Below, piece by piece: positions 13,235-62,958 of a stretch of 64,000 nucleotides of DNA. Each line of letters begins with the position of its first letter. Position 1 is the stretch's first letter. The translations under genes were made by a program, and so were the position numbers. Under the pieces are notes generated by a model that ran no database searches, was not told the origin of the DNA, and was given only the letters and a program-made list of their open reading frames with translations. The stretch comes from Vitrella brassicaformis CCMP3155 (taxonomy: Eukaryota > Protista > Chromerida): assembly GCA_001179505.1 (NCBI GenBank), contig CDMY01000350.1, positions 42,544 through 106,543 on the forward strand, read 5' to 3'.

Positions 13235-14359
13235 TCACCCCACCACCGTCCCCCTGTCGATGACGTCGCTCTCGAGACCGAATAGCCGTAGCACACGGCG
13301 GGCGGCACCAGCCGACACAGTGTAGCGGTCGGCGAGAGGCTGAGACCGATCAGCCACGGGTGCCTCGGTCTTGAACAGCTGGATGTCGCCGTAGCGCATC
13401 CACAGGGCTGCAGCGACGGTGTGGCCAGGGCGGAAGCCGCTCACAATCACACGACGATGGTCACTGACCTGGGCGGCAGCATTCAGATCGCCCCCATCGT
13501 AGCGCCAGTCGACAGCGATGCCCAAACCCTCTATGATTGCATCGGTCACCAGCCGGCGATAGCGAGGGTCGTCACTGCCGATGTGTGCCCACAGCACCCT
13601 CATTTCGCCCACTCCATCCGACCACCAGAAAAGCACCGCGTACAGCAGGAATGCCGAGAATGAGTGGTAGAGCCTGCCGCCCCGTCGGATGACGGGGTCA
13701 GTCCGCTTATAGCCCTCAGCGTACCGATGGGCGGCCGGCAGCTCACCCAACGCCACCACACCAAACGTTACACCGCCGATCCGATAGCTTCTGTCGTTAT
13801 CGGCTGGCTGCAGCGCCAGGCTGGTCCCTCTGTGTGTCAGCTGCTGGCCGATGATCTTGTAGATGGCCATGGCGAGTGGCATTTGGTGGAAGGCCGTGGC
13901 TGTGGGCAGCGAGTCAGCCGACAGGCGGAGAGGCCGCGTCGCATCAGCAGGGGTGAGTCCACAGATGAAGGCCAGCCGAAGGAACCGCCCCATCGCCCGC
14001 CACTCCTCGCCACTGCCCCGCTCCAGCACATAGACCACCTTCAAGCCGGCCTCCACATCACCGCCAATGTCGAAGGCCAACACGTCCACCAGGCCCAGAC
14101 GAGTGATGGCCTTGTGGATGTGCTGCTGGAGGGCGTTGAGCACGGTGCTGTTGACGGTCTCCGCAGTGTGGCCCAGCAGCTCCTGTTGCCGAGTGCGGGT
14201 GGCGAGCTGCGAGCGGAGAGCGGCTCGTTTGGCATCGTCAGTCGCCATGGCCATGGCGGCCATCTTGCTGATGGGCAGTGACAGGTCAAAGAGGTCGGCG
14301 GGCTGGAAGAGGGCAGGGCTCGGGGGACGGGACGAGGGCGCCGCACCAGTGGGCTGCAT
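13235..14359 (-). CDS. Family A copy A2 (MQPT-type N-terminus), intact 374 aa
   Basis: Intronless ORF MQPTGAAPSSRPPSPALFQPADLFDLSLPISKM...SDVIDRGTVVG, near-identical N-terminus to A5, A7, A10 and A12. Confidence 0.85.
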   Translation of the reverse strand: MQPTGAAPSSRPPSPALFQPADLFDLSLPISKMAAMAMATDDAKRAALRSQLATRTRQQELLGHTAETVNSTVLNALQQHIHKAITRLGLVDVLAFDIGGDVEAGLKVVYVLERGSGEEWRAMGRFLRLAFICGLTPADATRPLRLSADSLPTATAFHQMPLAMAIYKIIGQQLTHRGTSLALQPADNDRSYRIGGVTFGVVALGELPAAHRYAEGYKRTDPVIRRGGRLYHSFSAFLLYAVLFWWSDGVGEMRVLWAHIGSDDPRYRRLVTDAIIEGLGIAVDWRYDGGDLNAAAQVSDHRRVIVSGFRPGHTVAAALWMRYGDIQLFKTEAPVADRSQPLADRYTVSAGAARRVLRLFGLESDVIDRGTVVG

Positions 14360-14886
14360 CGTCAGTGTCCTGAGGTCTCATCGAAGCGTCACTCAAGACA
14401 CGGAAAAATAGCAGTGTGTGTGAATTTTGACGCCTTCCCTGCCTCTCTGACTGTCCTCTCACCTTCATGACTGTCCTTTGCGATTGAGAGACCCATCTGC
14501 GAGCTTGGCTTGCAGACCTTCTCTTTTTTCCCGTTTGGTGACAACAGGGCCGCCTGGGGTGTCGGTGAGATGCACAAACAGCTGCCGAGATGGTATCGAT
14601 CACCACAGATCTGTCACCTGACTCACCTCCCTGACCGGCTCTGATCTGACGAGTTGAGGTGAGATAAGGCGGGCAGGAGAGTCTGATGACCACAGTGGTT
14701 TCTGTGTGTTGGTGGCAGATTTCCGGCACTCTCCGACAGAGGAGGACAGCCCTGTACCGCAGGTATCTGAGACCATCAGGGGCAGCCAAGCCGCCGACAG
14801 AGGTGCGCGAAGGCAAAGAAAGCCGCTCGGATGTTCACAGATCGATGAGGCGCCACACATGCATTCGCTCATATGTGGGTGTGCAG
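14360..14886. promoter_or_regulatory. Cassette spacer (putative bidirectional promoter with 5'UTR introns), copy 1
   Basis: Shares blocks with the other spacers: gcgagcttgg..tgcaga, tttggtgacaacagggccg, gatctgacgagttgaggtgaga, agccgctcggatgtt.acagatcgatgaggcgccac..atgcattcgctcatatg. Confidence 0.65.
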
Positions 14887-16227
14887 ATGTCGGGTGCTGG
14901 TGATGATGAAGGTGGTGCCGCTAGCTCTGACGAGGCATCCTCATCGTCATCGACGAGAGGGTCGTCGCATTTCCGGCAACACTCAGTCACACACTACAGG
15001 GTAAGAGGACAGCAAGAAGAGCAGCCAAGAAAGGCAAAGAAAGACTCGAAAAGCTCAAAAATTTTGTTCGTGTCTGACGATGTGTGGCTGCAGATCTCTC
15101 ACACGACGCCTCGCTCAGACCCCAGGACAGTCAGTATGCAGCCCACTCGCACACCGCCCGCCTCCCGTCCCGCCAGCCCTCCGCTCTTCCAGCCCGCCGA
15201 CCTCCTTGACATCGCCATCAGCAAGGCGGCTGAAATGGCAATGTCACCCGACCCCAACAGACGCGCCGCTCTCCACTCACAGATCAGCAGCAGCGATCCT
15301 GATGATGAGAACACGGTGCTCCATGAGGCGAGGCGCCACGTCGAGAAGGCCTTGGGTCCTCTCGGCCTGCAAGACGTTTTGGCCTTTGACATCGGCGATG
15401 ATCTGGAGGCCGTCTTGAAATTCGTCTATCTGATTGAGCGGGGCAGTGACGGGGAGTGGCGAGCGGTGGGGCGGTTCCTTCGGCTGGCCTTCATGTACCG
15501 GCTCACCCCTGCCAATGCGACGCGGCCTCTGCGGCTATCAGCCAACGCACTGCCCACAGCAACGGTTTTCTATCAGATGCCACTCGCCATGGCCATCTAC
15601 AAGATCATCGGACAGCAGCTCACATACAGAGGGACCCGCCTGGCGCTGCAGCAAGGCAATGACGGGAGCTATCGGATCGGCAATGAGGCGCCCCTTCGTG
15701 TGGTACCGTTGGGCGAGCTGCCTGCCGGCCATCCCTATACTGAAGGCTACAAGGAGACCGATCCCGTCATCCGCTGGGGCGAAAACTGGCTCTTTCCCTC
15801 ATTCTCGACATTCCTGCTGCGCCTGCTGGCTGGCAGGTGGTGCTGTCAACAAGGGGTCGACTGCATGAGGGTGCTCTCAGCACGAGTCGGCCGTGATGAC
15901 CACCGCCGTGGCCGCTTGATAGCCGAGGGCATCACAGAGGATCTGGGCATCGCTGTCAACTGGCGCAACGACCGAGGCAACCTGAATGGTGATCATGTGG
16001 ATGAGTACCGTTTTGTCATACTGTGCGGCTTCAGACGAGGCGAGACGGTCGCTGCATATCTGTGGGTGACGGCCCGCCACATCGAGCTGTGGACGACCGA
16101 GCGACGCGCTTCGAATCTACCCTCGCTCGTCTTCCGCTTCCCCCTATCAGTGCCCCTGTGGTGTCGTGTGTTGGCGCGCTTCGAGCTGGAGACCGACGTC
16201 ATCAGCAGGGTGAGGGTGCTGGTGTGA
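14887..16227 (+). CDS. Chimeric gene: family B leader exon (MSGAGDDEGGAASSDEASSSS) fused in frame to family A copy A3 (MQPTRTPP... from 15139)
   Basis: Single open frame. A 93-nt phase-0 intron at 15001-15093 (gtaaga...ctgcag) corresponds to the 5'UTR intron of MQPT-type genes. The downstream part is a complete A core. Confidence 0.7.
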   Translation: MSGAGDDEGGAASSDEASSSSSTRGSSHFRQHSVTHYRVRGQQEEQPRKAKKDSKSSKILFVSDDVWLQISHTTPRSDPRTVSMQPTRTPPASRPASPPLFQPADLLDIAISKAAEMAMSPDPNRRAALHSQISSSDPDDENTVLHEARRHVEKALGPLGLQDVLAFDIGDDLEAVLKFVYLIERGSDGEWRAVGRFLRLAFMYRLTPANATRPLRLSANALPTATVFYQMPLAMAIYKIIGQQLTYRGTRLALQQGNDGSYRIGNEAPLRVVPLGELPAGHPYTEGYKETDPVIRWGENWLFPSFSTFLLRLLAGRWCCQQGVDCMRVLSARVGRDDHRRGRLIAEGITEDLGIAVNWRNDRGNLNGDHVDEYRFVILCGFRRGETVAAYLWVTARHIELWTTERRASNLPSLVFRFPLSVPLWCRVLARFELETDVISRVRVLV

Positions 16228-16489: not shown

Positions 16490-17542
16490 TCAGAGGGACG
16501 GGTGGGTTGCGTTTTCAGTATCGAGACCGAATGGACGCAGCACGCAGCGCCATACCGGCATCGACGCAGGGTAGCGGACAGCAAACGATGCAGGCGCATC
16601 AGCAGCAGGCCGCTCAGTGGTGTACAGCTTGATGGAGCGGCCTGACGATACGCACAGATACGCAGCGATCGTCTCGTTGGGTCGGAAGCCGCTCACAAGC
16701 ACACGACGAGAGTCCGTCACCCTATTATCATTCAGATCGCCCCGATCGTAGCGATAGTCGACAGCGATGCCCACATCCTCTGTGATGGCGTCGGTCCTCA
16801 GCAGACGGCCATAGCGAGGGTCGCCACGGCCAATTCCTGCAGTGAGCACCCACTTGTGACCCGCCCCCCATCCATCTGACCACAAGACGAGCAGCGTGTG
16901 CAGCAGGAATGTCGAGAATGAGGGAATGAGTAGGACGCCCTATCGGATGACAGGGTCGGTCCGCTGGTAGCCGTCAGCATAGCGATGCCCGCCCGACAGC
17001 TCAGCCAACGGCACCACACGAAACCGCCCACCGCCGATCTGATAGCTCCCATTGCCGATTCGATAGGCCCCGTTGCCGGCTCGCTGCAGCGCCAGGCTGT
17101 GTGTATTGTGTGTGAGCAGGTGGCCGAATAGCCGATAGATGGCCATCGTCAAGGGCAGATGATGGAATGCCGTCCGTCTGGGAAGGTGGGCTGTCAGCCA
17201 CTGAGCCGACAGCACCAGGGGCAGCCCATTGGCAGGGATCAGCCGATAGATGGCGGCCAGCCGGATGAACCGCCCCATCCCACGCCACTCATTGCTGCCC
17301 TGCTCCAGAACATAGGCCGCCCGCAGCACATACGTGAATGGGAGAGGGGCGGTGCGGTCGATGTCGATAAGGCCGGTGAGTGAGTGGCGGGCGAGGGAGC
17401 CGTCGATGCGCTCCACCAGCAGAGCGGCCGTCACTAGAGCCGCCTTCGCTTGGCAGGTCGCTCGGACACAGACCGCCTCATGGACGAGAAGGGACGGCAG
17501 AATGCGCCTCCGCCACAAGTCGTCGGGCACCGAATCAGACAT
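16490..17542 (-). pseudogene. Family A copy A4 (F-box-like N-terminus MSDSVPDDLWRRRILPSLLVHE), single in-frame TAG at 16940-16942
   Basis: DPVIR-TAG-GVLLIP where paralogues read DPVIR-W-G. Both ORF halves are in the same frame. Confidence 0.8.
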
Positions 17543-17580
17543 CGCCTCGAATCACTGAGTCAGCACATGGCAAACACCTT

Positions 17581-24532: not shown

Positions 24533-25672
24533 TCACCGCATCACCGTCCCCCTGTCGATGACGTCACGCTCGAGATTGAACGGCCGCAGCGCACGGCGCC
24601 ATAGGGGCACCGTCACGAGATAGCGGACAGCGAGGGATGCAGGCCGATCAGCAGCAGGCGCCTCGGTCGTCTGCAGCTCGATGCAGCCAGGCCCCACCCA
24701 GAAATTGGCAGTGACGGTCTCGTTCGAGCGGAAGCCACTCACAATGACAAAGCGATAGTCGGTCACATCAGCAGCATTCAGATTGCCCCCGTCATTGCGA
24801 TTGTCGACAGCGATGCCCAAATCCTCTGTGATGCCCTCAGTCCTCAGAAGACGGTCATAGCGAGGGTCGTCACGGCCGATCTGTGCACGCAGCACCCTCT
24901 TGTCATCAATGTCCTCTTGACAGCACCACGTCCAGAGCAGCCTGTTCAGCAGGAATGCCGAGAATGAGGGAATGAGTAGGATGCCCCAGCGGATGGCGGG
25001 ATCACTCCGCTTGTAGCCCTCAGCATAGCGATGGCCGCCCGGCAGGCCACCCAGCACAAAAAACCTCACATCGCCGATCCAGTATCTCCCGTTGCCGTTG
25101 TCGTTGGCTTGCTGCAGTGCCAGGCGGGTCCCTCTGTATGTCAGCTGCTGGCCGAACAGCCGATAGATGGCCATCGCCAATGGCAGCTGGTGGAATGCCG
25201 TCCTGCTGGGAAGGTGGGCTGTCAGCCACTAAGCCGACAGCACCAGGGGCAGCCCATTGGCAGGCGTCAGCCGATAGATGGCGGCCAGCCGAAGAAACCG
25301 CCCCATCGCCCGCCACTCCTCGCCATTGCCCCGCTCCAGCACGTAGACCACCTTCAAGCCGGCCTCCACATCACCGCCAATGTCGAAGGCCAACACGTCC
25401 GCCAGGCCGAGACGACTGAGGGCCTTGTGGATGTGCTGCTGGACGGCGTTGAGCAGGGTGCTGTTGACGGTCTCCGCAGTGTGGCCCAGCAGCTCCTGTT
25501 GCCGAGTGCGGGTGGCGAGCTGCGAGCGGAGAGCGGCTCGTTTGGCATCGTCAGTCGCCATGGCCATGGCGGCCATCTTGCTGATGGGCAATGACAGGTC
25601 AAAGAGGTCGGCGGGCTGGAAGAGGGCAGGGCTGGGGGGACGGGGCGAGGGCGCCGCACCAGTGGGCTGCAT
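24533..25672 (-). pseudogene. Family A copy A5 (MQPT-type N-terminus, mosaic middle), in-frame TAG at 25229-25231
   Basis: LPLVLSA-TAG-WLTAHLP where paralogues read LSA-Q-WLTAH. The rest of the frame is intact. Confidence 0.8.
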
Positions 25673-26288: not shown

Positions 26289-27581
26289 ATGTCGGCTGCG
26301 GCTGCTGATGGGGCTGGTGGCTCTGCAGCTGACGAGCCCTCCTCGTCGGCTGCGTCTGCCGCCAATGGTGACCAACACGTTCGCTGCAGAAAGGCACAAC
26401 CATGCAGACACATGCAATGACACTGTGTGTGTGATGGTATGTGTGTTTGTGTGTGTGGGGTGGTCATAGGTGGCGATCAGCCAGAGAGCGGGCCCTTCTC
26501 GGCCGTCCCAGCTACACTCATGCCGGCCATCGCCCAGTGCCTCACCAGCTATGCCGACTTGTGTGCCTTCCGCCGCGTCGACAAAACCCGCCGTGATGCC
26601 ATCACCGCCGCCGTCCTGATACCCATCCTGCAACGACTGCTGGAAGTGCTGCTGGCATCTCTCGGCCTCGGTGGCTTCCTGGTGTGCATGGTCCCCCAGC
26701 TGCCCCTCCCTGAGGCACTCAGCCACGGCTGCTGCACCGCATATCTCATCGAACAGCTCACACGTCGGCTGTTCATGCTCGAGAGGGGCGGCGATTGGGC
26801 CAGATGGCGGCCAGTGCTGGCGATGCTGTATTTCCTGAGAGGCGAGAGGCCTGTGGTGCTGAGTGACGACAACTTCGGCGTGATCAACAGCCGGGCGGCC
26901 TTTGTGAGTGAGACAGAGGCCGTCCGGCAGTGGAAGATACTCAGCCGGGGGGTCACTGTGGACCTCAACGGCCAACAGGAAAAGCTGATGAAGGGCGACA
27001 GCATTCTTCGCCCTTACGATGGCCGTTACGCCCCCGCCCTCCTCACGTCTGCCAGCCCCGTCTTCCCTCATCCATTCGACCCCGCCGATCCGCCCACACA
27101 GCTGACAGGCTGCGTATACCCCAACTACACATCAATGGTGGCCTTCAAGCTGTTCGAGTGGCTTCGCCACGGCGGCCACCTCCCTTGCATCAGACACTGG
27201 TTGTCTTACTGTCGTGCTTCTGCTGCATCTCGGCGTGTGTGTGAGCTGCTGGCGGTCCCTCCTAGCGATGTGGCACAGAGGGGGGCGGGGGCGGGGGTGT
27301 TCGACGAGAAGTGGCCGTGGTCTGGCAGGGATGGGCATCATCGCCTGGTGGTGCTGGGGAGTGGGGCGATGGGGGACGGGCACATGGCGGTCATTCAGCT
27401 GGAATTCCTCCAGCAGAGTCCAGGCTGTGTCATCATCTACACCACCGAGTCGGCCCCACACGATCAGGCGCGCACTGTTGTGATGAGAGTGCTGAGGGAT
27501 CACCTAGGTCGCAAGGTGTGGCGCGGGGAGATTGAGTGGAGGCAAGCGTCGGCCAACACGAGGAGATGCACTGTAATGTGA
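26289..27581 (+). CDS. Family B copy B1 (Ser/Ala leader exon + F-box-like VPATLMPAIAQCLTSYADLCAFRRVDKT + core), intact
   Basis: ATG 26289, phase-1 intron 26368-26469, then an uninterrupted ORF with the motifs MLERGGDWARWRPVL, EAVRQWKILSRG, FDPADPPTQL, YTSMVAF, HRLVVLGS..MGDGHMA and IYTTESAPHD. Confidence 0.8.
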
Positions 27582-31867: not shown

Positions 31868-33020
31868 ATGGCGTCTTCGGTGCCCGACGAGCTGTGGCGA
31901 GGGCGAGTGGTGAGGCGCCTGCCGCTGCCTGATGTGATCTCTCTCCGCAACTGCTGGTCCATCGGCACGTCCATCGTCACGGCCGCTCTGCTGGTGGAGC
32001 GCATCGACGGCTCCCTCGCCCGCCACTCACTCACCTGCCTCGTCGACATCGACCGCGCCGCCCCTCTCCCATTCAGCTATATGCTGCGGGCGGCCTATGT
32101 GCTGGAGCAGGGCAGCGACGAGTGGCCTGGGATGGGGCGGTTCATCCGGCTGGCCGCCATCTATCGGCTGACGCCTGCCAATGGCTGCCCCTGGTGCTGT
32201 CGGCTCAGTGGCTGACAGCCCACCTTCCCAGCAGGACGGCATTCCACCAGCTGCCATTGGCGATGGCCATCTATCGGCTGTTCGGCCACCTGCTCACAAA
32301 CAATGGGCTGCCTCTCCGTCTGTCGGCTGACTCGCTGCCCACAGCAACGGCCTTCCACCGGATACCACTCGCCATGGCCATCTATCGGCTGTTCCGCCAC
32401 CTGCTGACATACGGATTCAACAGCCTGGCGCTGCAGCCAGCGGACAACGGACGGTATCGGATCGGCTATTTGCCCGTTCGTGTGGTGCCATTGGGTGAGC
32501 TGCCGAGCGGCCATCGCTATGCTGAGGGCTACAAGCGGACCGACCCCGTCATCCGGTGCGGCTCCCTGCTCTTCCGCTCATTCTCGGCATTCCTGCTGCA
32601 CACGATGATCTGCTGGTGCCGTCAAGAAAAGGGGTGGGCGAGATGAGGGTGCTGGGGGCACGCATCGGTAGTGAGGACCCTCGGTATGGCCGTCTGCCGA
32701 GGGCCGACAACATCACAGAGAATCTGGGCATTACTGCCGACTGCTAGGGCTATCGCTACGATTGGGGCGACCTGAATGGTGCTCATGGGAGAGACTGTCG
32801 TCATGTAATTGTGAGCGGATTCCGGCTCGGGGAGACCCTCGCTGCGCACCTGCATGTGAAGGGTGGTTACATCAACCTGTACACGACCGAGGCATTCGTG
32901 GCTGATCGGTCTCAGCCTCTCGCCGACCGCTACACTGTGTCGGTTGGTGCCGCCCGCCGTGTGCTACGGCTATTCGGTCTCGAAAGCGACGTCATCGACA
33001 GGGGGACGGTGTACGGGTGA
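31868..33020 (+). pseudogene. Family A copy A6 (F-box-like N-terminus MASSVPDELWRGRVVRRLPLPDVISLRN), frameshifts and a stop
   Basis: The core is split over ORFs 31865-32215, 32122-32646 and 32811-33020. Frameshifts near 32190 and 32640, TAG near 32745, and an internal duplicated segment. Confidence 0.85.
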
Positions 33021-34751: not shown

Positions 34752-35891
34752 TCACCGCAGCACCGTCCCCCTGTCGATGACGGCACTCTCCAGTTCGAAT
34801 CGCCGCAGCAGACGGCGGGCGGCACCAACCGACTCTCGGAAGCGGTCTGCGAGCGGATGAGACCGATCGTGGCCAACAGGTGCCTCGGTCGTGCACAGCT
34901 GGATGTCGCCGTAGCGCATCCACAGGGCTGCAGCGACGGTGTGGCCAGGGCGGAAGCCGCTCACAATCACACAACGATAGTCCGTCGCATTTGTAGCATC
35001 ATTCAGATCGCCCCGATCCAAGCGCCCGTCGATAGCGATGCCCACATCCTCTGTGATGTCGTCAGTCCTCAGCAGACGGCCATAGCGAGGGTCATCACTG
35101 CCGATGTCTATACGGAGCGCCCTCCTCTCGCCCACCCCCTCTCCATAGCACCACCAGGAGAGCAGCGCGTGTAGCAGGAAGGCCGAGAAGCAGGGGTAGA
35201 GCCTGGCGCCCCAGCGGATGACAGGGTCGGTCCGCTTGTAGCCGTCAGCATAGCGATGGCCGCCCGGCAGCTCACCCAATGGCACCACACGAAACAGACC
35301 CACACCGCCGATGCGATAGTGGCCGTTGTCGGCTTGCCGCAGCGCCAGGCTGGTCCCTCTGTATATGAGCTGCTGGCCGACGATCTTGTAGATGGCCAGT
35401 GCGAGTAAGAGCTGGTGGAAGGCCGTTGCTGTGGGCAATGCGTCGGCCGACAGACGGAGGGGCCGCGTCGCATTGATAGGGGTCAGCCGTTAGATGAAGG
35501 CCAGCCGAAGGAACCGCCCCATCGCCCGCCACTCCTCGCCACTGCCCCACTCCAGCACATAGACCACCTTCAAGCCGGCCTCCATATCACCGCCAATGTC
35601 GAAGGCTAACACGTCCGCCAGGCCGAGACGACTGAGGGCCTTGTGGATATGCTGCTGGACGGCGTTGAGCAGGGTGCTGTTGACGGTCTCCGCAGTGTGG
35701 CCCAGCAGCTCCTGTTGCCGAGTGCGGGTGGCGATCTGTGAGCGGAGAGCGGCTCGTTTGGCATCGTCAGTCGCCATGGCCATGGCGGCCATCTTGCTGA
35801 TGGGCAATGACAGGTCAAAGAGGTCGGCGGGCTGGAAGAGGGCAGGGCTGGCGGGACGGGACGAGGAGTGGGCCGCACCAGTGGGCTGCAT
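34752..35891 (-). pseudogene. Family A copy A7 (MQPT-type), single in-frame TAA at 35490-35492
   Basis: RLAFI-TAA-RLTP where paralogues read RLAFI-Y-RLTP. Same frame on both sides. Confidence 0.8.
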
Positions 35892-37850: not shown

Positions 37851-38168
37851 TCTCGCATGCGGTTCACCGTCACCTCTCTCTCCTGACGCTCGTCTGACGA
37901 ATTGAGGTACGAGAGGACACTGGCATGACACTGTGTGTGTCATCTTTTTCTGTGTGGCTGTGGCTGATCTGAGGCCTTCTTGCGTCTATGCTGTTGAGTG
38001 AGGGTGGGCGAGAGAAGTCTGTCGCAGCCAGCTGACTTACTTACATCCCCAGGAGCCGACTGAGGTGCGGAAAGGGCAAGAAAGCCACACTGATGTTCAC
38101 ATATCGATGAGGCGCCACCAATGCATTCGCTCATATGATGTCTGTGTTTTGTGTGTTTGTGTGAGCAG

Positions 38169-39633: not shown

Positions 39634-40248
39634 TGGGTGGGTGCCGGAGTCTCTCCACCAACAGTCATTGTGAGATCGTTCTTCGTCATTTTAAGCTGAG
39701 AAACTGTGGGCGAGCCGACGGCCAACACGAGGAGATGCACTGTGATGTGATCGGGGGCTTTATCGCTGTGTCGCTCTCAAGCAGGAGAGGACACCGACAG
39801 ATAGACGGCCGGGCACAACGGGTTTTTGCTCTCTGCCCGTCCGGTTGCCTGGGGCCTCTGCGTGTGCCTTTCCTTGACAGTATGAGAGGGAACAAAGGCA
39901 GAGTTAAGTGGTTTTTCTGTTCTGTTGCTGCCCTTCCTGCTGTGAGCTTCGTCCTCGTCGTGTATCTGTACGCTCATCTGTAGGTGTTAGAACAGAGCTC
40001 TATGTGTGTGTGTGTGAGTGTGTGTGTGTACTGTAAGTTTTACAGTGAGGTAAGACCGATCCTGTGTCACACAGATTGAGTGAAATGAGTGCATTTCTGC
40101 CCATTGGATTGGATGGACCAACTAACCACAGTAACACGGCCATCCGTTGGTCGGGTCGAGGGAGTCAGAGTGTTCTATATACACACACAGACATGTGCAC
40201 CCACAAAAGATACCATCACCCGCATCTGTGCAATCAAAAACCACACAC

Positions 40249-44748: not shown

Positions 44749-45799
44749 TCACCCCACCACCGTCCCCCTGTCGATGACGTCACTCTCGAGACCGAATCGC
44801 CGCAGCAGACGGCGGGCGGCACCCACCGACTCTCGGAAGCGGTCGGCGAGCGGATGAGACCGATCGGCAGCAGATGCCTCGGTCGTGTACAGGTGGATGC
44901 GGCCATTGCACACCACCAGATACGCCGCAACGGTCTCGCTCGGCCGGAATCCGCTCACAATCACATAACGACTGTCCCTCACATTACCATGGTTCAGATT
45001 GCCCTCATCGTAGCGGAAGTCGACAGCGATGCCCTGCTCCTCTGTGATGGCGTCGGTCAGCAGACGGCCAAAGCGAGGGTCACTACTGCCGATGTTGGCC
45101 CACAGCATCCTCCTCTTGTCCTCTCCCTCTTCATGGCACCAGAGGCCGAGTACCCTGTCCAGCACCGCGTTCAGCAGGAATGCCGAGAATGAGGGGAAGA
45201 GATTGCCGCTCCACCGGATGACGGGGTCGGTCCGCTTGTAGCCGTCAGCATAGCGATGGCCGCCCGGCAGCTCACCCAACGGCACCACACGAAACGTCAC
45301 GTTGCCAATCCGATAGAGTCCGTCATTGCCGATTTGCTGCAGCGCCAGGCCGGTCCCTCTGTATGGGAGCTGTCGGCCGATGATCTTGTAGATGGCCATC
45401 GCCAATGGCAGCTGGTGGAATGCCGTCCTGCTGGAAAGGTCGGCTGTCAGCCGCTGAGCCGACAGCACCAGGGGCAGCCCATTGGCAGGCGTCAGCCGAT
45501 AGATGGCGGCCAGCCGGATGAACCGCCCCATCGCAAGGCCACTCGTTGCTGCCCTGCTCCAGCACATAGGCCGCCCGCAGCACATAGCTGAATGGGAGAG
45601 GGGCGGTGCGGTCGACGTCGATGAGGCCGGTGAGGGAGTGGCGAACGAGGGAGCCGTCGATGCGCTCCACCAGGAGAGCGGCCGTGACGATGGACGTGCC
45701 GATGGCGTGGGAGGAGGTGCGGAGAGAGATCACATCAGGCAGCTGCAGGCACCTCACCACCCGCCCACGCCACAGATCGTCGGGCAGCGAAAACGCCAT
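44749..45799 (-). pseudogene. Family A copy A8 (F-box-like MAFSLPDDLWRGRVVRCLQLPDVISLRTSS), +1 frameshift near 45535
   Basis: Two overlapping ORFs (45323-45802 and 44749-45585). Reads tggccttgcgatgggg where paralogues have tggcctgggatgggg. Confidence 0.85.
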
Positions 45800-46305: not shown

Positions 46306-46339
<34 letters not shown>

Positions 46340-46557: not shown

Positions 46558-47684
46558 TCACCCCATTACCCTGCCCCATTCATGACCGCATCTTCGAGAT
46601 CGAATCGCCGCAGCAGACGGCGGAGAGCACCAACCGACACCGGGTAGCGGTCGGCGGGCGGCTGAGACCGATCAGCCACATGCGTCTCGGTCGTGTGCAC
46701 ATCGATGATGCCATCCTCCACCCACAGGTGCGCAGCGACGGTCTGCCCTGCTTGGTGGCCGCTCAGAATCACCCGACGAGCAGCATCATTCAGATCGCCC
46801 GGTCGCTGCGATAGTCGACAGCGATGTCCAAATCCTCTGTGATGCCCTCAGTCAGCAGGCGGCCATAACGAGGGTCATGACGATCGATGGGTGCCCACAG
46901 CACCCTCCTGCGGCCCACCCCCTCTCCATCCGACCACCTGCCCAGATCCTCTGGGATGGTGTGAGTCATCAGCAGTCCGCCCTGTCTACGCAGCACCTTC
47001 CTGCGACCCACCCTCCCCTGACGGCGCCACCGGCAAAGCAGCCTCTCTAGCAGGAATGCCGAGAATGAGCGATAGAGTAGGAGACCGCGGCCGCAGCGGA
47101 TGACGGGGTCGGTCCGCTTGTAGCCGTCAGCGTAGCGATGGCCGTCCGGCAGCTCATCCAATGGCACCACACGAAACAGACCCATGCTGCCGATCCGATA
47201 GGCCCCGCTGTAGGCGTCTGGCTGCAGCGCCAGGCTGTGTGTGTTGTGTGTGAGCATGTGGCCGAACAGCCGATAGATGGCCATCGCCAATGGCAGCTGG
47301 TGGAATGCCGTCCTGCTGGGAAGGTGGGCTGTCAGCCACTGAGCCGACACACACCAGGGGCAGCCCATTGGCAGGCGTCAGCCGATAGATGGCGGCCAGC
47401 CGGATGAACCCCCCCATCCCAGGCCACTCGCTGCTGCCCTGCTCCAGCACATATGCCGCCCGCAGCACATAGGTGAATGGGAGAGGGGCGGTGCGGTCGA
47501 TGTCGATAAGGCCGGTGAGGGAGTGGCGGGCGAGGGAGCCGTCGATGCGCTCCACCAGCAGGGCGGCCGTGACGATGGACGTGCCGATGGCGTGGGAGGT
47601 GGTGCGGAGAGAGATCACATCAGGCAGCTGCAGGCACCTCACCACCCGCCCTCGCCACAGGTCGTCGGGCAGCGAAAACGCCAT
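46558..47684 (-). pseudogene. Family A copy A9 (F-box-like), several frameshifts and an internal duplication
   Basis: ORFs 47154-47687, 46790-47368 and 46566-46772 together cover the A core. Confidence 0.85.
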
Positions 47685-55937: not shown

Positions 55938-56501
55938 TCACTTCAGTCCACCGCGTCCTCTCCCCCGCGCCACACCATGCCCCCACGATGCCCGTCCACT
56001 ATCGTGGTGAGGGTCCGGCTCAGTCGTGCAGACACAAACGCAGCACCGATCCGGGTCCCCCAACAGCTCCATTATCGCCGTGTGCCCTTCGCCGACCGCC
56101 CCACCCAGCACTATCAGTCGGCCACGATGGCCCCCGTCGACTTGTCCAACACGGCCGCCCCCGCCCCCCACTGTGTGTCATCTGTGGGAGAGGCCGCCAG
56201 CAGCTCATTCACGCGCCGGGATGCAGCAGAGGCACGACAGTAAGACACCCAGGATCTGAAGGTGCGGATGTGGCGGCTGCCACAAAGCCAGTAGAACAGG
56301 ACGAATGCCACCATTGATGTGTAGTTGGCTTATGTGCCGCCGTCTAGCTGTGTGGGCGGGTCGGCGGGATCCAATGCAGCATGAGGGAAGTGTGGACTCG
56401 GTTCGGTGAGGAGGGTGGGGAGGCAGTGGGTCTGAGAGCGGAGAATCTTGTTGCGGGTCCACCAGCTGTATCTGTTGGCCGTTGTGGTTCAAAGTGATCA
56501 T
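55938..56501 (-). pseudogene. Family B fragment B5 (3' half only, frameshifted), tandem to B4
   Basis: ITLNHNGQQIQL, SMVAFVLFYWL..SYCRASAASRRVNELLA, RLIVLGGAVGEGHTAIMEL and CVCTTEPDPH appear in shifting frames. Confidence 0.8.
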
Positions 56502-56547
56502 CTATCCCGCCACACATTCCGCCCCAGGTGATGTCCCAGCACACCCA

Positions 56548-57840
56548 TCACAGCATCGCGCATCTGGACGAGGGGGCCCACAAGGTCGCGTAGATGCCCA
56601 CATAGCGTCCATCCCCCCACTCCTCCAGCTTAATGAGTGCCATGTGTCCCTCGCCCATCGCCTCACTCCCAAGCACCACCAGCCGCTCATGGCCCTCCCC
56701 GTCAGACCACTTCTCGTCGAACACGGCCGCCCCCGCCCCCCACTGTGTCGCATCGCTGGGAGGGGCCGCCAGCAGCTCACACACACGCCGATATGCAGCA
56801 GGGTCAGGACGGCAAGACCACCAGGCTTTGATGCAAGGGATGTGGCCGTCTTTATAGAGCCAGGAGAGCAGGATGAATGCCACCATTGATGTGTAGCTGG
56901 GGCTCGTCCAGTCGCTCAGCTTAGTGGGCGGATTGGCGGGGTCGAATGTGTCGTGAGGGAAGAGGGGGCTGCCAGAGGGGAAAAGCGTGCGGAGATAGTA
57001 GCTCGTCTCGACAGGGAGGCGGAAAAACCTGTCGCCGTTCATCAGTCGTCTCTGTTGGCCTCGAAAACTGACAGTGACATCTCGGCTGAGTATCTTCCAC
57101 CGCCGGACGGCCTCCGTCTCGCCGATGAAGGCCGCCCGGCTGCCAAACACACTGAAGTTGTCGTCACTCAGCACCACAATCCTCCGGCCTCGCAGCAAGT
57201 ACAGCATCTCCAGCACAGGCCGCCATCTGGCCCAATCGCCGCCCCTCTCGAAGATGAAGAGCCGACGTGTGATGGCCACAATGATGGACACCCTCTGGGT
57301 CAGCTGAGGCATCGGCACCTCCATCAGACCGCCAAAGATGGCCTCCACCACGACGGGCAGCAGTCGTATGAGAATGGGCAGCAGGACGGCGGCGGTGAAT
57401 TGGGTGGGATGGGCGGCGATGAGGGCCTCCAGCTGTGAGTAATTCCTGACGTACTCGGCAACTAAGGGCACCGCCTCATCTGGCACATCAGCGGGACTGA
57501 TGAGGCGATCATACTGATGCTGCTGGTGCTGATTGACACACGACACATGGCTGGCACCTGCACCACCATCAGCACACACACACACACACAGACAGTCAGC
57601 TGTGTGCCGGCATGATTGTGCCTTTCTGCAGCGAACGTGTTGGTCACCATTGGCGGCCGACGCAGCGGACGATGTCGTGTTCTTAGATATGCCATTCTCG
57701 ACACGAGCAGCCGATGTCTGCAATCAACGCAGACAGACAGGCAAACAGACAGACAGACATCATGTGTGCCTGCCGGTGCTGTCCTTCTCCGCTCGCCTCG
57801 CCGTGCATAGGCCCTTCAGCCACCGCCATAGACCAAGCAT
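56548..57840 (-). CDS. Family B copy B4, closest to B2; the C-terminus lacks the TTESAPHD end and runs into B5
   Basis: Leader MLGLWRWLKGLCT, then ..DVPDEAVPLVAEYVRNYSQLEALI.. and a full core to YVGIYA. Confidence 0.75.
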
Positions 57841-58323
57841 GCCGGAGGAAGAGGCCCTTGTGAGTCACAGATCTGCCACAATCACACGCAGAGACCACAC
57901 AGGCCGTCATTGCTGATCTCATAAGGCCCTCTTGGGTGCCCTCCCTCACCTCAATGCGTCAGATCAGCGCCGCTCAGAGAGATGACGGCCACATCTCTGT
58001 TGATCGATGTCATCACAGCGGCGCTTCGGTCACCTCCCAGGCACTCCACGCCGCCCTGTTATCGCAAAAAGGCAAAGATTCTCGGCTGCAAGCTCGCAGA
58101 GCTGCGCAACGCTTTAACGACGCCGTCAGGCCACCTAGGGTGCTCCCTGAAACCGCTGCTGCGCAACGCTTTAAGCTCTTAAGACGCTCATCGGAGGCGA
58201 GAGGGCAGCAAGAGAGACAGATGAAGTATCGAAATGCCGCAAACCGATCCCTTTTCGTGTGTCTGTTGTGTGTGGCTGCAGATCTCTTGTGTGATGCCTC
58301 GCTGAGGCCTCAAGACACTCCCG
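57841..58323. promoter_or_regulatory. Cassette spacer (bidirectional), copy 4, inverted relative to copies 1-3
   Basis: Reverse-complement homology to 35892-36336 and 25673-26288. Confidence 0.7.
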
Positions 58324-59466
58324 ATGCAGCCCACTGGTGCGGCGCCCTCGTCCCGTCCCGCCAGCCCTGCCCTCTTCCAGCCCGCCGACCTCTTTGACCT
58401 GTCATTGCCCATCAGCAAGATGGCCGCCATGGCCTTGGCGACTGACGATGCCAAACGAGCCGCTCTCCGCTCGCAGATCGCCACCCGCACTCGGCAACAG
58501 GAGCTGCTGGGCCACACTGCGGAGACCGTCAACAGCACCTTGCTCAACGCCGTCCAGCAGCACATCCACAAGGCCCTCAGTCGTCTCGGCCTGGCGGACG
58601 TCTTGGCCTTCGACATTGGCGGTGATGTGGAGGCCGGCTTGAAGGTGGTCTGTGTGCTGGAGCGGGGCAGTGGCGAGGAGTGGCGGGCGATGGGGCGGTT
58701 CCTTCGGATGGCCTTCATCTACCGGCTGACCCCTGCTGATGCGCCGCGGCCTCTCCGGCTGTCGGCTTCCTCGCTGCCCACAGCAACGGCCTTCCACCAG
58801 CTGCCACTCGCCATGGCCCTCTACAAGACCTTCGGCCAGCAGCTCAGCTACATGGGGATCAGCCTGGCGCTGCAGCAAACCGACGACGGGGCCTATCGGA
58901 TCGGCAATGTGCCGTTTCGTGTGGTGCCGTTAGGTGAGCTGCCGGGCGGCCATCCCTATGCCGACGGCTACAAGCGGACCGATCCCGTCATCCGCTGGAA
59001 CGAATGGCTCCTCTTCCCCTCATTCTCGGCCTTTCTGATGGATAGGCTGCTCGTGTGGTGGTGTGATGGAGAGGGGGTGGGTTGCAAGATGGTGCTGTTG
59101 GCACGCATCGGTAGTGAGGACCCTCGCTACGTCCCTCGCTATGGCCGTCTGCTGAGAACCGACGACATCACAGAGGATCAGGGCATCGTCGCCGACTATT
59201 GCAACGACTGGGGCAATCTGAATGCTGCTGATGCGACGGACTATCGTCGTGTGATTGTGAGCGGTTTCCGGCCCAACGATACCGTCACTGTCTACCTGCA
59301 GATGGGGCACAACGATATCCAGCTGTGGACGACCGAGGCACCTGCTGCTGATCGGCCTCATCCACTCGCGGACCGCTACACTCTGTCGATACCCCTGTGG
59401 TGTGGCGTGCTGCGGCGATTCGAGCTGGAGACCGACGTCATCGACAGGGGGATGGTGCTGAGGTGA
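58324..59466 (+). CDS. Family A copy A10 (MQPT-type), intact 380 aa
   Basis: Uninterrupted ORF. Micro-duplication EDPRYVPRYGRLL. Confidence 0.85.
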   Translation: MQPTGAAPSSRPASPALFQPADLFDLSLPISKMAAMALATDDAKRAALRSQIATRTRQQELLGHTAETVNSTLLNAVQQHIHKALSRLGLADVLAFDIGGDVEAGLKVVCVLERGSGEEWRAMGRFLRMAFIYRLTPADAPRPLRLSASSLPTATAFHQLPLAMALYKTFGQQLSYMGISLALQQTDDGAYRIGNVPFRVVPLGELPGGHPYADGYKRTDPVIRWNEWLLFPSFSAFLMDRLLVWWCDGEGVGCKMVLLARIGSEDPRYVPRYGRLLRTDDITEDQGIVADYCNDWGNLNAADATDYRRVIVSGFRPNDTVTVYLQMGHNDIQLWTTEAPAADRPHPLADRYTLSIPLWCGVLRRFELETDVIDRGMVLR

Positions 59467-60140: not shown

Positions 60141-61274
60141 TCACCCCACCACCCTCCCCCTATCGATGACGGCACTCTCGAGGCCGAATGGCCGCAGCAG
60201 ACGGCGAGCGGCACCAGCCGACTCGGGGTAGCGGTCGGCGACCGGCTGAGACCGATCAGCCACATGTGCCTCGGTCGTGTACAGATGGATGATGTCCGAC
60301 CATACATACAGATAGGCAGCGACGGTCTCTCCCGGTCTGTGGCCGCTCACAATCACATTGCGAAAGTCAATCGGATCAGCAGCATTCAGATTGCCCCCAT
60401 AGGCATCGATACCCTGATCCTCTGTGATGGCATCGGTCAGTAGACGGCCATAGCGAGGGTCGCCCCTGCCGATGACTGCACGCAGCACCATCCTGTGACG
60501 CACTCCTTCTCCATTCGACCACCAGCGGAGCAGCTTGTGCAACAGAAACGCCGAGAAGGAGGGGTAGAGCCATGCGCTCCAGCGGATGACGGGGTCGGTC
60601 CGCTTGTAGCTCTCGGCATAGCGATGGCCTCCCGGCAGCTCACCCAACGGCACCACACGAAATGGACCAGAATTGCCGATCCGATAGCTCCCGTTGTCGG
60701 CTTGCTGCAGCGCCCGGCTGTTGAATCCGTATGTCAGCAGGTGGCGGAACAGCCGACAGATGGCCATGGCGAGTGGCATCCGATGGGAGGCCGTTGCTCT
60801 GGGCAATGCGTCAGCCGACAGACATAGAGGCAGCCCATTGTGTGTGAGCATGTGGCCGAACAGCCGATAGATGGCCATGGCCAATGGCAGCTGGTGGAAT
60901 GCCGTCCTGCTGGGAAGGTGGGCTGCAAGCCACTGAGCCGACAGCAGCAGGGGCAGCCCATTGGCAGGCGTCAGCCGATAGATGGCGGCCAGCCGGATGA
61001 ACCGCCCCATCCCCGGCCACTCGTTGCTGCCCTGCTCCAGCACATAGGCCGCCCGCAGCACATAGGTGAATGGGAGAGGGGCGGTGCGGTCGATGTCGAT
61101 GAGGCCGGTGAGTGAGTGGCGGCCGAGGGAGCCGTCGATGCGCTCCACCAGCAGCGCGGCGGTCACTAGAGCCGCCTTCGCCCGGCAGGCCGCTCGGACA
61201 CAGACCGCCTCATGGACGAGAAGGGACGGCAGAATGCGCCCGAGCCATAGGTCGTCGGGCACCAAATCAGACAT
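60141..61274 (-). CDS. Family A copy A11 (F-box-like MSDLVPDDLWLGRILPSLLVHE), intact, with an internal duplication
   Basis: Uninterrupted ORF of ~377 aa. Confidence 0.85.
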   Translation of the reverse strand: MSDLVPDDLWLGRILPSLLVHEAVCVRAACRAKAALVTAALLVERIDGSLGRHSLTGLIDIDRTAPLPFTYVLRAAYVLEQGSNEWPGMGRFIRLAAIYRLTPANGLPLLLSAQWLAAHLPSRTAFHQLPLAMAIYRLFGHMLTHNGLPLCLSADALPRATASHRMPLAMAICRLFRHLLTYGFNSRALQQADNGSYRIGNSGPFRVVPLGELPGGHRYAESYKRTDPVIRWSAWLYPSFSAFLLHKLLRWWSNGEGVRHRMVLRAVIGRGDPRYGRLLTDAITEDQGIDAYGGNLNAADPIDFRNVIVSGHRPGETVAAYLYVWSDIIHLYTTEAHVADRSQPVADRYPESAGAARRLLRPFGLESAVIDRGRVVG

Positions 61275-61830
61275 CTTCACTCACTCAGTCAGCAGATGGC
61301 AGCCACCTTCCAGACAGCACAAGGACACACACAAGGAAGCAGAAAGCAAATGCATTTTGAATGGGCCAGGTCTGCATGGCGTGCGTGGTTCTTCTCTCAT
61401 CCTTCATAAGCTGACCAACTGCCTTGCACAATAAGGGAAGCCTCTGTCTGGTCACTCGCAAAGATCAAGGGGCCTCCGACCTGCCTAAAAATACAGAAAT
61501 CATACCAGCTGGTATTCCTCATGCCATCAGGCCCTCCCTCCCGCCCTCTCGAACCTCATAGAGGAGGTGGCAGAATGTGTGTGGATCGACAGCATGACAG
61601 CAGCTCTTTGTGTGTATTTGTCATTTCTGGGCGAAGAGATCTGCAACCAAGCTTGCAGATGGATCGCCTTCCCGTCGGGAGAGATTTCGAACCTCTGGAG
61701 CCACTCAGTGAGGGTAAAGGGCCGCAAGAAAAGCAGATGAAGAGTAAGAGCGCTTCACGAGCTGTTTGTGTTTGTCCTGTGTCTGCAGATCTCTCAAACC
61801 CCGCTTCGCTGAGACCTCAGGACACTCCCG

Positions 61831-62958
61831 ATGCAGCCCACTGGTGCGGCGCCGTCGTCCCGTCCCGCCAGCCCTGCCCTCTTCCAGCCCGCCGACCTCT
61901 TTGACCTGTCATTGCCCATCAGCAAGATGGCCGCCATGGCCATGGCGACTGACGATGCCAAACGAGCCGCTCTCCGCTCGCAGATCGCCACCCGCACTCG
62001 GCAACAGGAGCTGCTGGGCCACACTGCGGAGACCGTCAACAGCACCCTGCTCAACGCCGTCCAGCAGCACATCGACAAGGCCCTCACTCGTCTGGGCCTT
62101 CAAGACGTGTTGGCCTTCGACATTGGCGGTGATGTGGAGGCCGGCTTGAAGGCGGTCTATGTGTTGGAGCGGGGCAGTGGCGAGGAGTGGCGGGCGATGG
62201 GGCGATTCCTTCGGCTGGCCTTCATCTACCGGCTCACCCCCTATGGGACGCGGCCCCTCCGGCTGTCGGCCGACTCGCTGCCCACAGCAATGGCCTTCCA
62301 CCAGCTGCCACTCGCCCTGGCCCTCTACAAGATCATCGGCCACCTACTCATACGCGGAGGGATCAGCCTGGCGCTGCAGCAAACCGACAACGGCCACTAT
62401 CGCATCGGCGGTGTGGGTCTGTTTCGTGTGGTGCCATTGGGTGAGCTGCCGGGCGGCCATCGCTATGCTGAGGGCTACAAGCTGACCGACCCCGCCATCC
62501 GCTGGGGCATCCTACTCATTCCCTCATTCTCGGCATTCCTGCTGTACGGGCTGCTTTCCTGGTGGTGTGATGGAGAGGGGGCGGGCAAGAAGATGGTGCT
62601 GTTGGCACACATCGGCCGTGGCAACGCTCGTCATCGCCGTCTGCTAAGCGACGACATCACAGAGGATTTGGGCATCGCTGTCGACTATCGCAATGACGGG
62701 GGCGATCTGAATCATGCTGATCCGATTGACTTTCGTAGTGTGATTGTCAGCGGCTGGCGATCCAACGAGACCGTCGCTGTCCACCTGTATGTGGGGAATG
62801 GCTCGATCATTCTGCACACGACCGAGCCATCTGCTGCCCATCGGTCTCATCCGCCCGCCGACCGCTACTCTGTGTCGGTTGGTGCCGCCCGCCGTCTGCT
62901 GCGGCCATTCGGTCTCGAGACTGATGTTATCGACAGGGGAAGGGTGGTGATGGAGTGA
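61831..62958 (+). CDS. Family A copy A12 (MQPT-type), intact 375 aa, head-to-head with A11
   Basis: Uninterrupted ORF. 5'UTR intron gtgagg...ctgcag as in the other MQPT copies. Confidence 0.85.
   Translation: MQPTGAAPSSRPASPALFQPADLFDLSLPISKMAAMAMATDDAKRAALRSQIATRTRQQELLGHTAETVNSTLLNAVQQHIDKALTRLGLQDVLAFDIGGDVEAGLKAVYVLERGSGEEWRAMGRFLRLAFIYRLTPYGTRPLRLSADSLPTAMAFHQLPLALALYKIIGHLLIRGGISLALQQTDNGHYRIGGVGLFRVVPLGELPGGHRYAEGYKLTDPAIRWGILLIPSFSAFLLYGLLSWWCDGEGAGKKMVLLAHIGRGNARHRRLLSDDITEDLGIAVDYRNDGGDLNHADPIDFRSVIVSGWRSNETVAVHLYVGNGSIILHTTEPSAAHRSHPPADRYSVSVGAARRLLRPFGLETDVIDRGRVVME

Follow-up and report, generated by a model that had tools for sequence, protein, structure and literature searches.

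Head-to-head gene pairs and a probable SCF-adaptor-like protein family in Vitrella brassicaformis

The window analysed here is a 64,000-nucleotide stretch of Vitrella brassicaformis CCMP3155 (contig CDMY01000350.1, positions 42,544 to 106,543 of the forward strand), and it contains many members of two related gene families, A and B, which are arranged head-to-head at five places. These genes probably belong to a diversifying SCF-adaptor-like family, and the pairs probably represent a two-gene unit with a compact bidirectional promoter that has been duplicated as a block. Each protein would consist of a constant N-terminal adaptor module followed by a shared body, in which a helical linker leads to a SUKH-like middle domain and then to a variable C-terminal α/β domain. 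The module may take several forms: F-box-like in the A' proteins; F-box-like with a leader exon, and often a CaaX tail, in the B proteins; and a non-F-box module, named MQPT, in the A proteins. The F-box-like members would most likely be SKP1-CUL1 substrate receptors, the recognition half of which diversifies as in the nematode and plant F-box families. The cassette is probably inherited as a unit and has spread by tandem and segmental duplication; recombination in its conserved centre has probably replaced B bodies by A' or A bodies, with the B 5' exon region being kept.

The gene family and its head-to-head pairs

The A and B proteins are remote paralogues with a collinear core (hhalign 82%, E 1.1e-5, 265 columns), as the first-pass annotation had proposed. 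When 1.84 billion representative proteins were searched with a profile, 126 matches were obtained, and all ten that were looked up came from Vitrella or metagenome contigs. Relatives were found in Vitrella or Vitrella-like metagenome contigs only, and in the CCMP3155 genome A has 113 or more matches and B 110 or more. Judged from these searches, the superfamily appears to be restricted to Vitrella, with well over 200 loci. MMETSP transcripts are present for both families, and in-frame stops occur in about one fifth of the A matches genome-wide. Two of the relatives (P0091 and P0222) bear the UniRef name "F-box protein", and another (P0217) has a ubiquitin domain at the C-terminal end. The members in the window are as follows.

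3406..4572, plus strand: A1, unpaired, its divergent N-terminus being of neither the classic MQPT nor the F-box-like kind (ORF, tblastn; annotated as P0034)
13235..14359, minus strand: A2, intact MQPT-type A of 374 aa, with a 5' block 96% identical to that of A10
14887..16227, plus strand: B-type leader (MSGAGDDEGG...) plus A3, in-frame fusion, head-to-head with A2
16514..17542, minus strand: A4, standalone A' with an F-box-like N-terminus and one in-frame stop (C350:59057-59947)
24536..25672, minus strand: A5, MQPT-type A with one in-frame TAG
26289..27581, plus strand: B1, head-to-head with A5 (annotated as P0088)
31868..33011, plus strand: A6, A'-type, frameshifted (tblastn)
34755..35891, minus strand: A7, MQPT-type A with one in-frame TAA
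36337..37282, plus strand: B2', truncated B, head-to-head with A7 (tblastn)
38065..39747, plus strand: B3, B gene in tandem after B2'
44755..45799, minus strand: A8, standalone A'-type with a more divergent F-box block
46578..47684, minus strand: A9, A'-type, degraded
55998..56419, minus strand: B C-terminal fragment (tblastn)
56548..57840, minus strand: B4 coding region, head-to-head with A10; C-terminus off the family consensus, ending in CAML
57950..58113, minus strand: B4 5' non-coding exon (spliced RNA-like contigs)
58324..59466, plus strand: A10, intact MQPT-type A of 380 aa, the sequence of the structure model (pLDDT 88)
58324..58690, plus strand: MQPT constant 5' block in A10, 93-99% identical among copies
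60141..61274, minus strand: A11, intact A', residues 1-34 modelled at the SKP1 F-box site, head-to-head with A12
60845..61274, minus strand: A' constant 5' block in A11, 94-98% identical among 9 copies
61831..62958, plus strand: A12, intact MQPT-type A of 375 aa
63719..64000, minus strand: B C-terminal part, running off the window end, convergent with A12

A3 is MQPT-like with its own ATG at 15136 (MQPT match 15136-15396), and its fusion with the leader forms an ORF at 14686-16227, in which the B-leader match covers 14803-14874. B1 combines an F-box-like motif and the core with a leader exon, a (TG)n intron and a CaaX tail (CTVM). B3 has an internal 84-nt duplication, and its CaaX tail (...ANTRRCTVM) forms an exon of its own.

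The tblastn map confirmed all of the five divergent pairs reported at first pass: A2 (minus, ATG 14359) with the B-type leader (14887), which continues in frame into A3; A5 (minus, 25672) with B1 (plus, 26289); A7 (minus, 35891) with B2' (plus, 36337); B4 (minus, 57840) with A10 (plus, 58324); and A11 (minus, 61274) with A12 (plus, 61831). The ATG-to-ATG spacing is 446-617 bp. Both members look intact only in A10/B4 and A11/A12; among the others, A5 and A7 are broken by their single in-frame stops, B2' is a truncated gene, and A2 is partnered by the leader remnant fused to A3. The spacers are also homologous, as had been noticed: identity over about 400 bp adjoining the MQPT ATG is 70-84% when the A/B pairs are compared, and the same holds among the A/A' pairs on contig C240; A10/B4 and A7/B2' are alignable across the full 1 kb at 81%. 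Duplication as a block was likewise borne out by unbroken homology across A, spacer and partner, and by contig C868, which is a tandem array of the cassette. Since the pairs are copies by descent, their recurrence is not independent evidence, and descent accounts for the pairing itself. In the spacer, an Rfam scan yielded only a sub-threshold snoRNA candidate, sR14 (23 bits against a cut-off of 38), which was dismissed.

Transcription with splicing was observed for B4. Its transcript is spliced at a 77-nt GT-AG intron (57873-57949), the joint 57872>57950 with ends CT..AC being found in runs X1 and X6, and contigs of the 5' exon cover 57950-58099 and 57950-58113. Contigs from RNA-like runs also match B4 exactly at 56718-57246, and transcript-like contigs of A10 extend to about 59714-59768. 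With this 5' non-coding exon included, the start of the B4 transcript comes to lie within about 210 bp of the A10 ATG; the kinds of run are guessed, and such contigs give neither expression levels nor transcript starts. The two genes of a pair may be co-regulated. Closely spaced genes in Vitrella lie head-to-head more frequently than chance would predict genome-wide (PMC4501334).

About 20 A/B pairs and five MQPT-type A/A' pairs were counted genome-wide; these are lower bounds, read by eye from coordinate lists of matches, and contig sequence outside the window was mapped for C240, C868 and C350:1-20000. Two rules proposed for the pairing held in the window but not beyond it. Every MQPT gene is paired within the window; genome-wide, however, at least 15 of the 28 assessable MQPT 5' blocks are paired. 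Similarly, the window has no pair of two F-box-type genes, but two A'/B head-to-head pairs exist elsewhere (C683 near 17.7/18.8 kb and C350 near 20.0/20.7 kb). Of the 15 A' genes nine are standalone, as are about half of the B genes. The rules on MQPT pairing and on partner type are tendencies only.

The co-phylogeny that the cassette had been expected to show was not found: linked A and B genes did not co-diverge in eight pairs (Mantel r=0.15, P=0.24, exhaustive permutation), in a test of low power owing to star-like A core distances (0.29-0.38). The selfish version of the first-pass proposal, in which the MQPT protein is a toxin, its F-box neighbour a linked antidote, and the element spreads by killing non-carriers, is very improbable on this and other grounds. 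It could account for the tight two-gene linkage and for the copying of the unit as a block, and F-box antidotes are reported in Caenorhabditis toxin-antidote elements (PMC12680543, 10.1101/2024.09.16.613340). However, the protein cast as toxin is a paralogue of the one cast as antidote, and fold searches of the A model recognised no toxic fold, neither enzyme nor pore. Dozens of copies are present in one genome, including intact MQPT genes without an antidote among the matches listed, and numerous A, A' and B genes are unpaired. The antidote would be the truncated member in A7/B2' and a mere leader for A2; pairs of two F-box-type genes and the stops in about one fifth of the A matches speak against it as well. 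Moreover, drive needs sex and outcrossing, neither of which is established for Vitrella.

Constant 5' blocks and variable bodies

The coding sequences of A and A' are mosaics: the first 360-430 nt are 93-99% identical among copies, compared with about 75% for the rest, and the identity profiles show that these constant blocks are sharply bounded. The MQPT 5' block was found at 21 or more loci at 89% identity or higher, and the A' 5' block at 15 loci genome-wide at 92-96%. The first 100 codons of the MQPT genes have dN 0.034 and dS 0.071; the core has dN 0.23 and dS 0.34 (omega about 0.65). The dS is thus about five times lower in the 5' block than in the core, which indicates that the N-terminal module is held constant while the body varies. 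Protein variability peaks at residues 221-270 and 301-350.

The near-identity at synonymous sites seems to point to concerted evolution rather than to purifying selection alone; selection on the nucleotide sequence, instead of gene conversion, could also lower the 5' dS. An omega of 0.65 in the core can be explained by relaxed constraint as readily as by diversifying selection, and stops are present in about one fifth of the A matches. In a Vitrella-like metagenome relative (L023, L024) identity of the 5' blocks to the CCMP3155 copies is 88-90%, compared with 95-96% within the genome, a difference that is ambiguous because the copy of the relative may belong to a different subgroup. Contig L023 ends 279 bp upstream of the ATG, short of any partner gene.

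A constant MQPT N-terminus suggests a conserved partner, and this brings in a regulatory relationship between neighbours, which is unlikely but free of any selfishness. The F-box-type neighbour (A' or B) would bind the MQPT paralogue via the shared core, and would either send it to the proteasome or be held in check by it, as in a heterodimer, decoy or pseudosubstrate. The two paralogous proteins have one core in common, a compact promoter links their genes, and an F-box-type gene lies opposite at least 15 of 28 MQPT genes; however, at least 13 MQPT genes have no partner among the matches listed, the standalone A' and B genes are numerous, and B also pairs with A'. The absence of co-divergence and the broken member in several pairs are also difficult to reconcile with such regulation.

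The constant N-terminus and variable C-terminal half, in a large lineage-specific family with birth-and-death turnover, would also be in keeping with an immune-like system. One member of each pair of head-to-head paralogues might recognise a foreign protein through its variable C-terminal half, and the other might link it to SCF signalling or degradation, in a layout analogous to that of plant NLR pairs; SUKH-type domains are indeed protein-binding immunity modules reused by eukaryotes (PMC3113570). Such a paired sensor is improbable, since Pfam and NCBIfam searches found no NB-ARC, LRR, TIR or other immune domain in the family, omega is below 1 on average, there is no known pathogen context, and pairing is not obligatory. 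A related and equally speculative idea, for which the chance is small, is that the pairs form a two-component SCF-based surveillance system new to alveolates, in which the MQPT protein and its F-box neighbour bind via the SUKH-like core. The MQPT module would then be a second adaptor, foreign or changing targets would be recognised by the variable C-terminal halves, and directed gene conversion would keep the constant 5' modules uniform.

N-terminal modules and body fold

For the N-terminal module, the first-pass annotation had claimed an F-box-like character in the partner genes. Structure modelling favours this for A', although no Pfam F-box is recognised in any A' or B protein. Residues 1-120 of A11 were co-folded with Vitrella SKP1 (P0108) with a score of 0.83, compared with 0.09 for the best control; the runs agreed on 89% or more of the contacts, with a partner pLDDT of 72 or above. 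The modelled interface places SKP1 residues 101-161 against A11 residues 1-34 and 69-77. Among solved complexes, 51 of 78 came up to the mark used for these co-folds, against two of 108 mismatched pairs; on eukaryotes the figures were 39 of 65 for solved pairs and two of 126 for unrelated pairs. The SKP1 co-fold indicates likeness, not binding, and such a score may reflect solved SKP1-F-box complexes already known to the predictor.

The Pfam F-box profiles (PF00646 / PF12937) gave no match at E<=1 in A11, B1, B3, B4 and 28 B relatives, and in a genome scan with PF12937 at E<=10 none of the 53 matches lay on family loci. For the B proteins, the putative F-box-like feature is recognised from a sequence pattern (e.g. 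FSAVPAEV.P.IAQCL.SYADLCAFRRIDK) and from the UniRef name of P0091; the structure model of B1 is of low confidence (pLDDT 57), the F-box-like region included. Nine of the 28 aligned B proteins end in CTVM, CTIM, CAVM, CTLM, CLAM, CIVM or CAML, and prenylation at this CaaX box (farnesylation) is predicted from the motif. A BC-box reading of the MQPT N-terminus was rejected, the motif being off the BC-box consensus by eye.

The A model is of high confidence (pLDDT 88, pTM 0.85), and its residues 117-251 form four main helices and six strands. The SUKH core fold has been described as four helices and six strands with a split sheet (PMC3113570). This region of A aligned with the SUKH protein 2icg_A (Z 5.1, rmsd 3.4, 109 aligned), with YobK 2prv_B (Z 4.4, rmsd 3.6, 108 aligned) and with FBXO3 of the SKP1-FBXO3 structure 9kbf_C (Z 4.7, rmsd 4.5, 126 aligned); the SUKH Z values of 4.4-5.1 are below the level of a clear match and may mean a common arrangement only. 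The middle domain of A may thus weakly resemble SUKH proteins such as FBXO3. SUKH profiles (PF09346 and related) gave no match in Pfam or NCBIfam, and the family profile recovered no SUKH chain among PDB sequences, where the A and B sequence profiles matched nothing meaningful. Foldseek of the A model gave no match at E<=0.001 in PDB or BFVD, the ESM Atlas shape search gave TM values of 0.30 or less, and an Atlas look-up by features returned nothing. The C-terminal domain of A has a TBP-like α/β fold (Z 6.5), and a second structural comparison of the Foldseek matches gave generic matches to this domain only (PGM domain 4, CYTH and TBP-like; Z <=6.7). The fold search with the B1 model gave generic β-rich matches only, of which 3dpt_B, 2mj7 and 3c6k_A are common to A.

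Significance and comparison with known systems

Chromerids are the closest free-living relatives of the apicomplexan parasites, and about one in 100 Vitrella genes seems to belong to this hitherto uncharacterised superfamily. If the F-box reading is true, it would represent a further independent eukaryotic expansion and diversification of ubiquitin-ligase adaptors, with a novel body for recognition and a subfamily without an F-box whose genes lie head-to-head with those of the adaptors; if the family is merely decaying after a duplication burst, the finding is ordinary. The sharply bounded 5' blocks beside diverged bodies provide a clean natural case of concerted evolution versus diversification within single genes.

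Several known systems share some of these features. The toxin-antidote elements of Caenorhabditis are also linked two-gene units in which one gene is F-box-like; however, the Vitrella pair members are homologous, occur in dozens of copies per genome, and show no sign of toxicity and no co-divergence. Plant NLR sensor/helper pairs are likewise divergent paralogues about 0.5 kb apart and duplicated as a unit, whereas the Vitrella genes have no NLR domains, their pairing is optional, the partner is B or A', and any joint function is conjectural. FBXL2 carries a CaaX box, and in this the prenylated F-box proteins of its type are similar to many B proteins; but the body of B is unrelated, and its prenylation is a prediction from the motif only.

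The large F-box families of nematodes and plants, reportedly described by Thomas in 2006 as having a conserved F-box and a diversifying substrate-binding domain, resemble the Vitrella family in their lineage-specific tandem expansion, many pseudogenes, conserved N-terminal adaptor and variable C-terminal half. In contrast to them, the N-terminal block in Vitrella is near-identical even at synonymous sites (dS 0.07 versus 0.34), the substrate-binding part has another fold, and paralogues lacking the F-box are found in head-to-head linkage.

The FBXO3/SKIP16-type proteins, in which a SUKH-1 domain comes after the F-box, differ from the Vitrella family in their profile matches, since the latter has none to F-box or SMI1/KNR4, and in the C-terminal domain, which is ApaG in FBXO3 and TBP-like α/β (Z 6.5) in Vitrella. 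They are encoded by one or two genes per genome rather than by hundreds of loci in one genus, and the Vitrella MQPT subfamily has another module in place of the F-box. F-box-SUKH fusions have been described together with the SUKH superfamily (PMC3113570), and the likeness to the FBXO3/SKIP16 type lies in the putative order of the parts: an SKP1-binding N-terminus, a helical linker, a SUKH-like α+β domain and a further C-terminal domain would follow each other in the same order.

Gene content and kinship of the two families

The families were mapped by tblastn, and the genome searched was the 72.7-Mb assembly (1064 contigs), in which the window is C350:42544-106543; the names of its best protein matches are those of Vitrella brassicaformis CCMP3155. 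The window contains 12 A-family genes, including those with an F-box-like N-terminus (A'), together with members of a second family, B.

Genes of the two families in the window (tblastn map)
A2, A5, A7, A10, A12 (n=5): classic MQPT N-terminus
A3: MQPT-like N-terminus
A1: divergent N-terminus
A4, A6, A8, A9, A11 (n=5): A', F-box-like N-terminus (MSDLVPDDLW...)
B1, truncated B2', B3, B4, two fragments, and a leader fused to A3: B-type

At several A loci elsewhere in the Vitrella genome the open frame is ~520 aa and the N-terminus is much extended. In the window, B3 carries an 84-nt tandem duplication (39345-39506), which repeats the motif HRLVV.GS.AMG.GHMA. The other features of the window include a tRNA-Leu(CAA) gene just upstream of A1 (3008-3090, +), a 600-N assembly gap at about 6100-6700, and an ORF within the family array (30450-31262, -), which is unrelated to the family and protein kinase-like by eye (HLDLSVENVLM, DFGMA). 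The (CA)n/(TG)n microsatellites are common both between genes and within introns, such as that of B1 near 26430.

No match was found for any family member in Pfam, NCBIfam or PDB sequences, and no similarity between A and B was detected by BLASTP. By hhalign (82%, E 1.1e-5) the A and B profiles are collinear across 265 columns, and the motifs LERGG.W, DP.DPPT, R.V[IV]V.G and TTE are common to both; therefore the two families are remote paralogues, and the homologous core proposed by the first-pass annotation was borne out. Profile searching across 1.84 billion representative proteins returned 126 hits, and all ten of those looked up were from Vitrella or metagenome contigs. Two relatives bear the UniRef name F-box protein. 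The ENA metagenome ERZ893784 holds a Vitrella-like relative with MQPT-A, B and A' genes (contigs L023 and L024), about 75-90% identical to the CCMP3155 genes; in L023 a B fragment is convergent to an A gene, like arrays of the unit. Among the Vitrella family members, P0217 has a C-terminal ubiquitin domain (E 3e-18), P0014 gives a borderline CBM_25 score (26.3 bits; cut-off 27.3), and P0031 carries a precomputed CBM_25 label (PF03423).

Many B proteins have a C-terminal CaaX box (CTVM, CAVM, CTLM, CTIM, CLAM or CIVM), which predicts, from sequence, that they would be farnesylated and membrane-anchored.

CaaX tails of B genes in the window
27567-27581: CaaX tail of B1
39730-39747: CaaX tail exon of B3, preceded by a stop and a short stretch that resembles an intron

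Head-to-head pairs and their duplication

The five divergent pairs claimed earlier (A2/B-leader, A5/B1, A7/B2', B4/A10 and A11/A12) are present as described, with the ATGs 446-617 bp apart; both members are apparently intact only in A10/B4 and A11/A12. The spacers are also homologous as claimed: the ~400 bp adjoining the MQPT ATG is 70-84% identical among the A/B pairs, and equally so among the A/A' pairs on contig C240. The homology is continuous across whole pair blocks, at 81% over 1 kb between A10/B4 and A7/B2' and at 89% between two A/A' pairs of C240; therefore the unit was copied as a block, in agreement with the earlier proposal. On contig C868 the A(-)/B(+) units form a tandem array. 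The homologous spacer segment kept in the A/A' pairs, together with the fusion of the B leader to A3, suggests that gene bodies were exchanged behind a retained 5' region.

At least 113 A matches and at least 110 B matches were found in the genome. About 20 head-to-head A-type/B pairs across 11 contigs and five MQPT-A/A' pairs were read from coordinate lists and a local map; these pairing counts are lower bounds, as only best-scoring candidates were covered. No same-strand A and B neighbours within 2 kb occur among the listed matches. The pairs are related by descent, and therefore their recurrences are not independent events; closely spaced Vitrella genes are also head-to-head more often than chance across the whole genome (PMC4501334).

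The claim that every MQPT gene is paired holds as a tendency. At least 15 of the 28 assessable MQPT 5' blocks lie opposite an A' gene, a B gene or the 5' remnant of a B gene; the other 13 have no partner among the matches listed, mostly where the contig holds a single family member. Among the same matches, 9 of 15 A' blocks are unpaired and about half of the B genes lack an adjacent A gene. The reported lack of pairs between two F-box-type genes is likewise a tendency, with at least two exceptions.

A'/B pairs with F-box-type genes on both sides
contig C683, near 17.7/18.8 kb
contig C350, near 20.0/20.7 kb

The co-phylogeny of A and B anticipated earlier was not found: across eight linked pairs, distances between A cores were uncorrelated with distances between B genes (Mantel r=0.15, P=0.24), in a test with little power because the A cores are nearly equidistant (0.29-0.38). 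In-frame stops interrupt 23 of 113 A matches, about a fifth.

Both families are represented by MMETSP transcripts. Contigs of four public sequencing runs, whose kinds were guessed (X1 and X6 as RNA; X3 as DNA-like), were compared with 56600-62500. The contigs of X1 and X6 agree exactly with B4 and with the 3' end of A10, and the intergenic stretches are empty. In both runs a 77-nt joint with GT-AG ends is present (57873-57949, minus strand); the same region is unspliced in X3. Therefore B4 has a 5' exon that covers about 57950-58113 and is separated from the A10 ATG by no more than roughly 210 bp. Its position fits a compact bidirectional promoter in the spacer.

The B4/A10 spacer also holds a 41-nt element (58122-58162) between copies of the 16-nt direct repeat CTGCGCAACGCTTTAA. 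It occurs once in the window, has copies with 100% identity on 10 other contigs and with 96-98% identity on four more, and contigs from all four runs end at its edges; it is possibly a tiny mobile element or an insertion.

Constant 5' blocks and variable cores

The 5' blocks of MQPT and A' genes span 360-430 nt, with sharp boundaries and copies on many contigs.

Constant 5' blocks in the window
58324-58690: block of MQPT genes
60845-61274: block of A' genes

When seven MQPT genes are compared, identity is 93-99% over nucleotides +8 to +365, 66-78% over the remaining coding sequence, and 32-79% over the spacer. The A' genes are 94-98% identical from -22 to +430 among nine copies, paired or unpaired alike. 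In the genome, at least 21 MQPT blocks on at least 12 contigs are at least 89% identical, and 15 A' blocks are 92-96% identical. The first 100 MQPT codons have a dN of 0.034 and a dS of 0.071; the core has a dN of 0.23 and a dS of 0.34 (omega ~0.65), and the protein is most variable at residues 221-270 and 301-350. Since dS is five-fold lower in the blocks, protein-level constraint alone is insufficient to explain them. They are most simply read as the product of gene conversion restricted to the adaptor module; alternatively, the nucleotide sequence itself might be under selection.

Predicted structures and likeness to SCF adaptors

No family member matched an F-box in Pfam, even in a permissive genome scan. 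Residues 1-120 of A11, an A' gene product, were co-folded with Vitrella SKP1 (P0108) in three runs. The score was 0.83, against 0.09 for the best control, with contact agreement of at least 89% across the runs and a partner pLDDT of at least 72. Among solved complexes 51 of 78 attain the co-fold mark, as against 2 of 108 mismatched pairs; for eukaryotes, 39 of 65 solved pairs attain it, as against 2 of 126 unrelated ones. In the modelled interface, A11 residues 1-34 and 69-77 lie against SKP1 101-161, in the C-terminal region to which F-boxes bind. The co-fold supports an F-box-like N-terminus, upholding that claim for A'; since SKP1-F-box complexes have already been solved, the model speaks for likeness rather than binding.

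Confidence is high for the A10 model (pLDDT 88, pTM 0.85) and poor for that of B1 (pLDDT 57). A Foldseek search with the A10 model found no match. By exhaustive structural alignment, the C-terminal domain (252-380) resembles TBP-like and CYTH-like alpha/beta folds (Z up to 6.5). The middle domain (117-251) resembles SUKH proteins (2icg_A, Z 5.1; YobK, Z 4.4) and FBXO3 from the SKP1-FBXO3 complex (Z 4.7), and its element count agrees with the SUKH core as published (four helices, six strands). This modelled likeness is a lead to the SUKH proteins, short of membership.

The first-pass annotation had read the pairs as a selfish or defence cassette, in which the F-box-bearing member would bind and ubiquitinate its partner; this interpretation is supported in part. 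Its block duplication, shared core and A' F-box likeness stand, and its toxin-antidote idea is without support. Most economically, the genes are read as a diversifying, lineage-specific family that encodes SCF-adaptor-like proteins and has a two-gene unit that was inherited and amplified.
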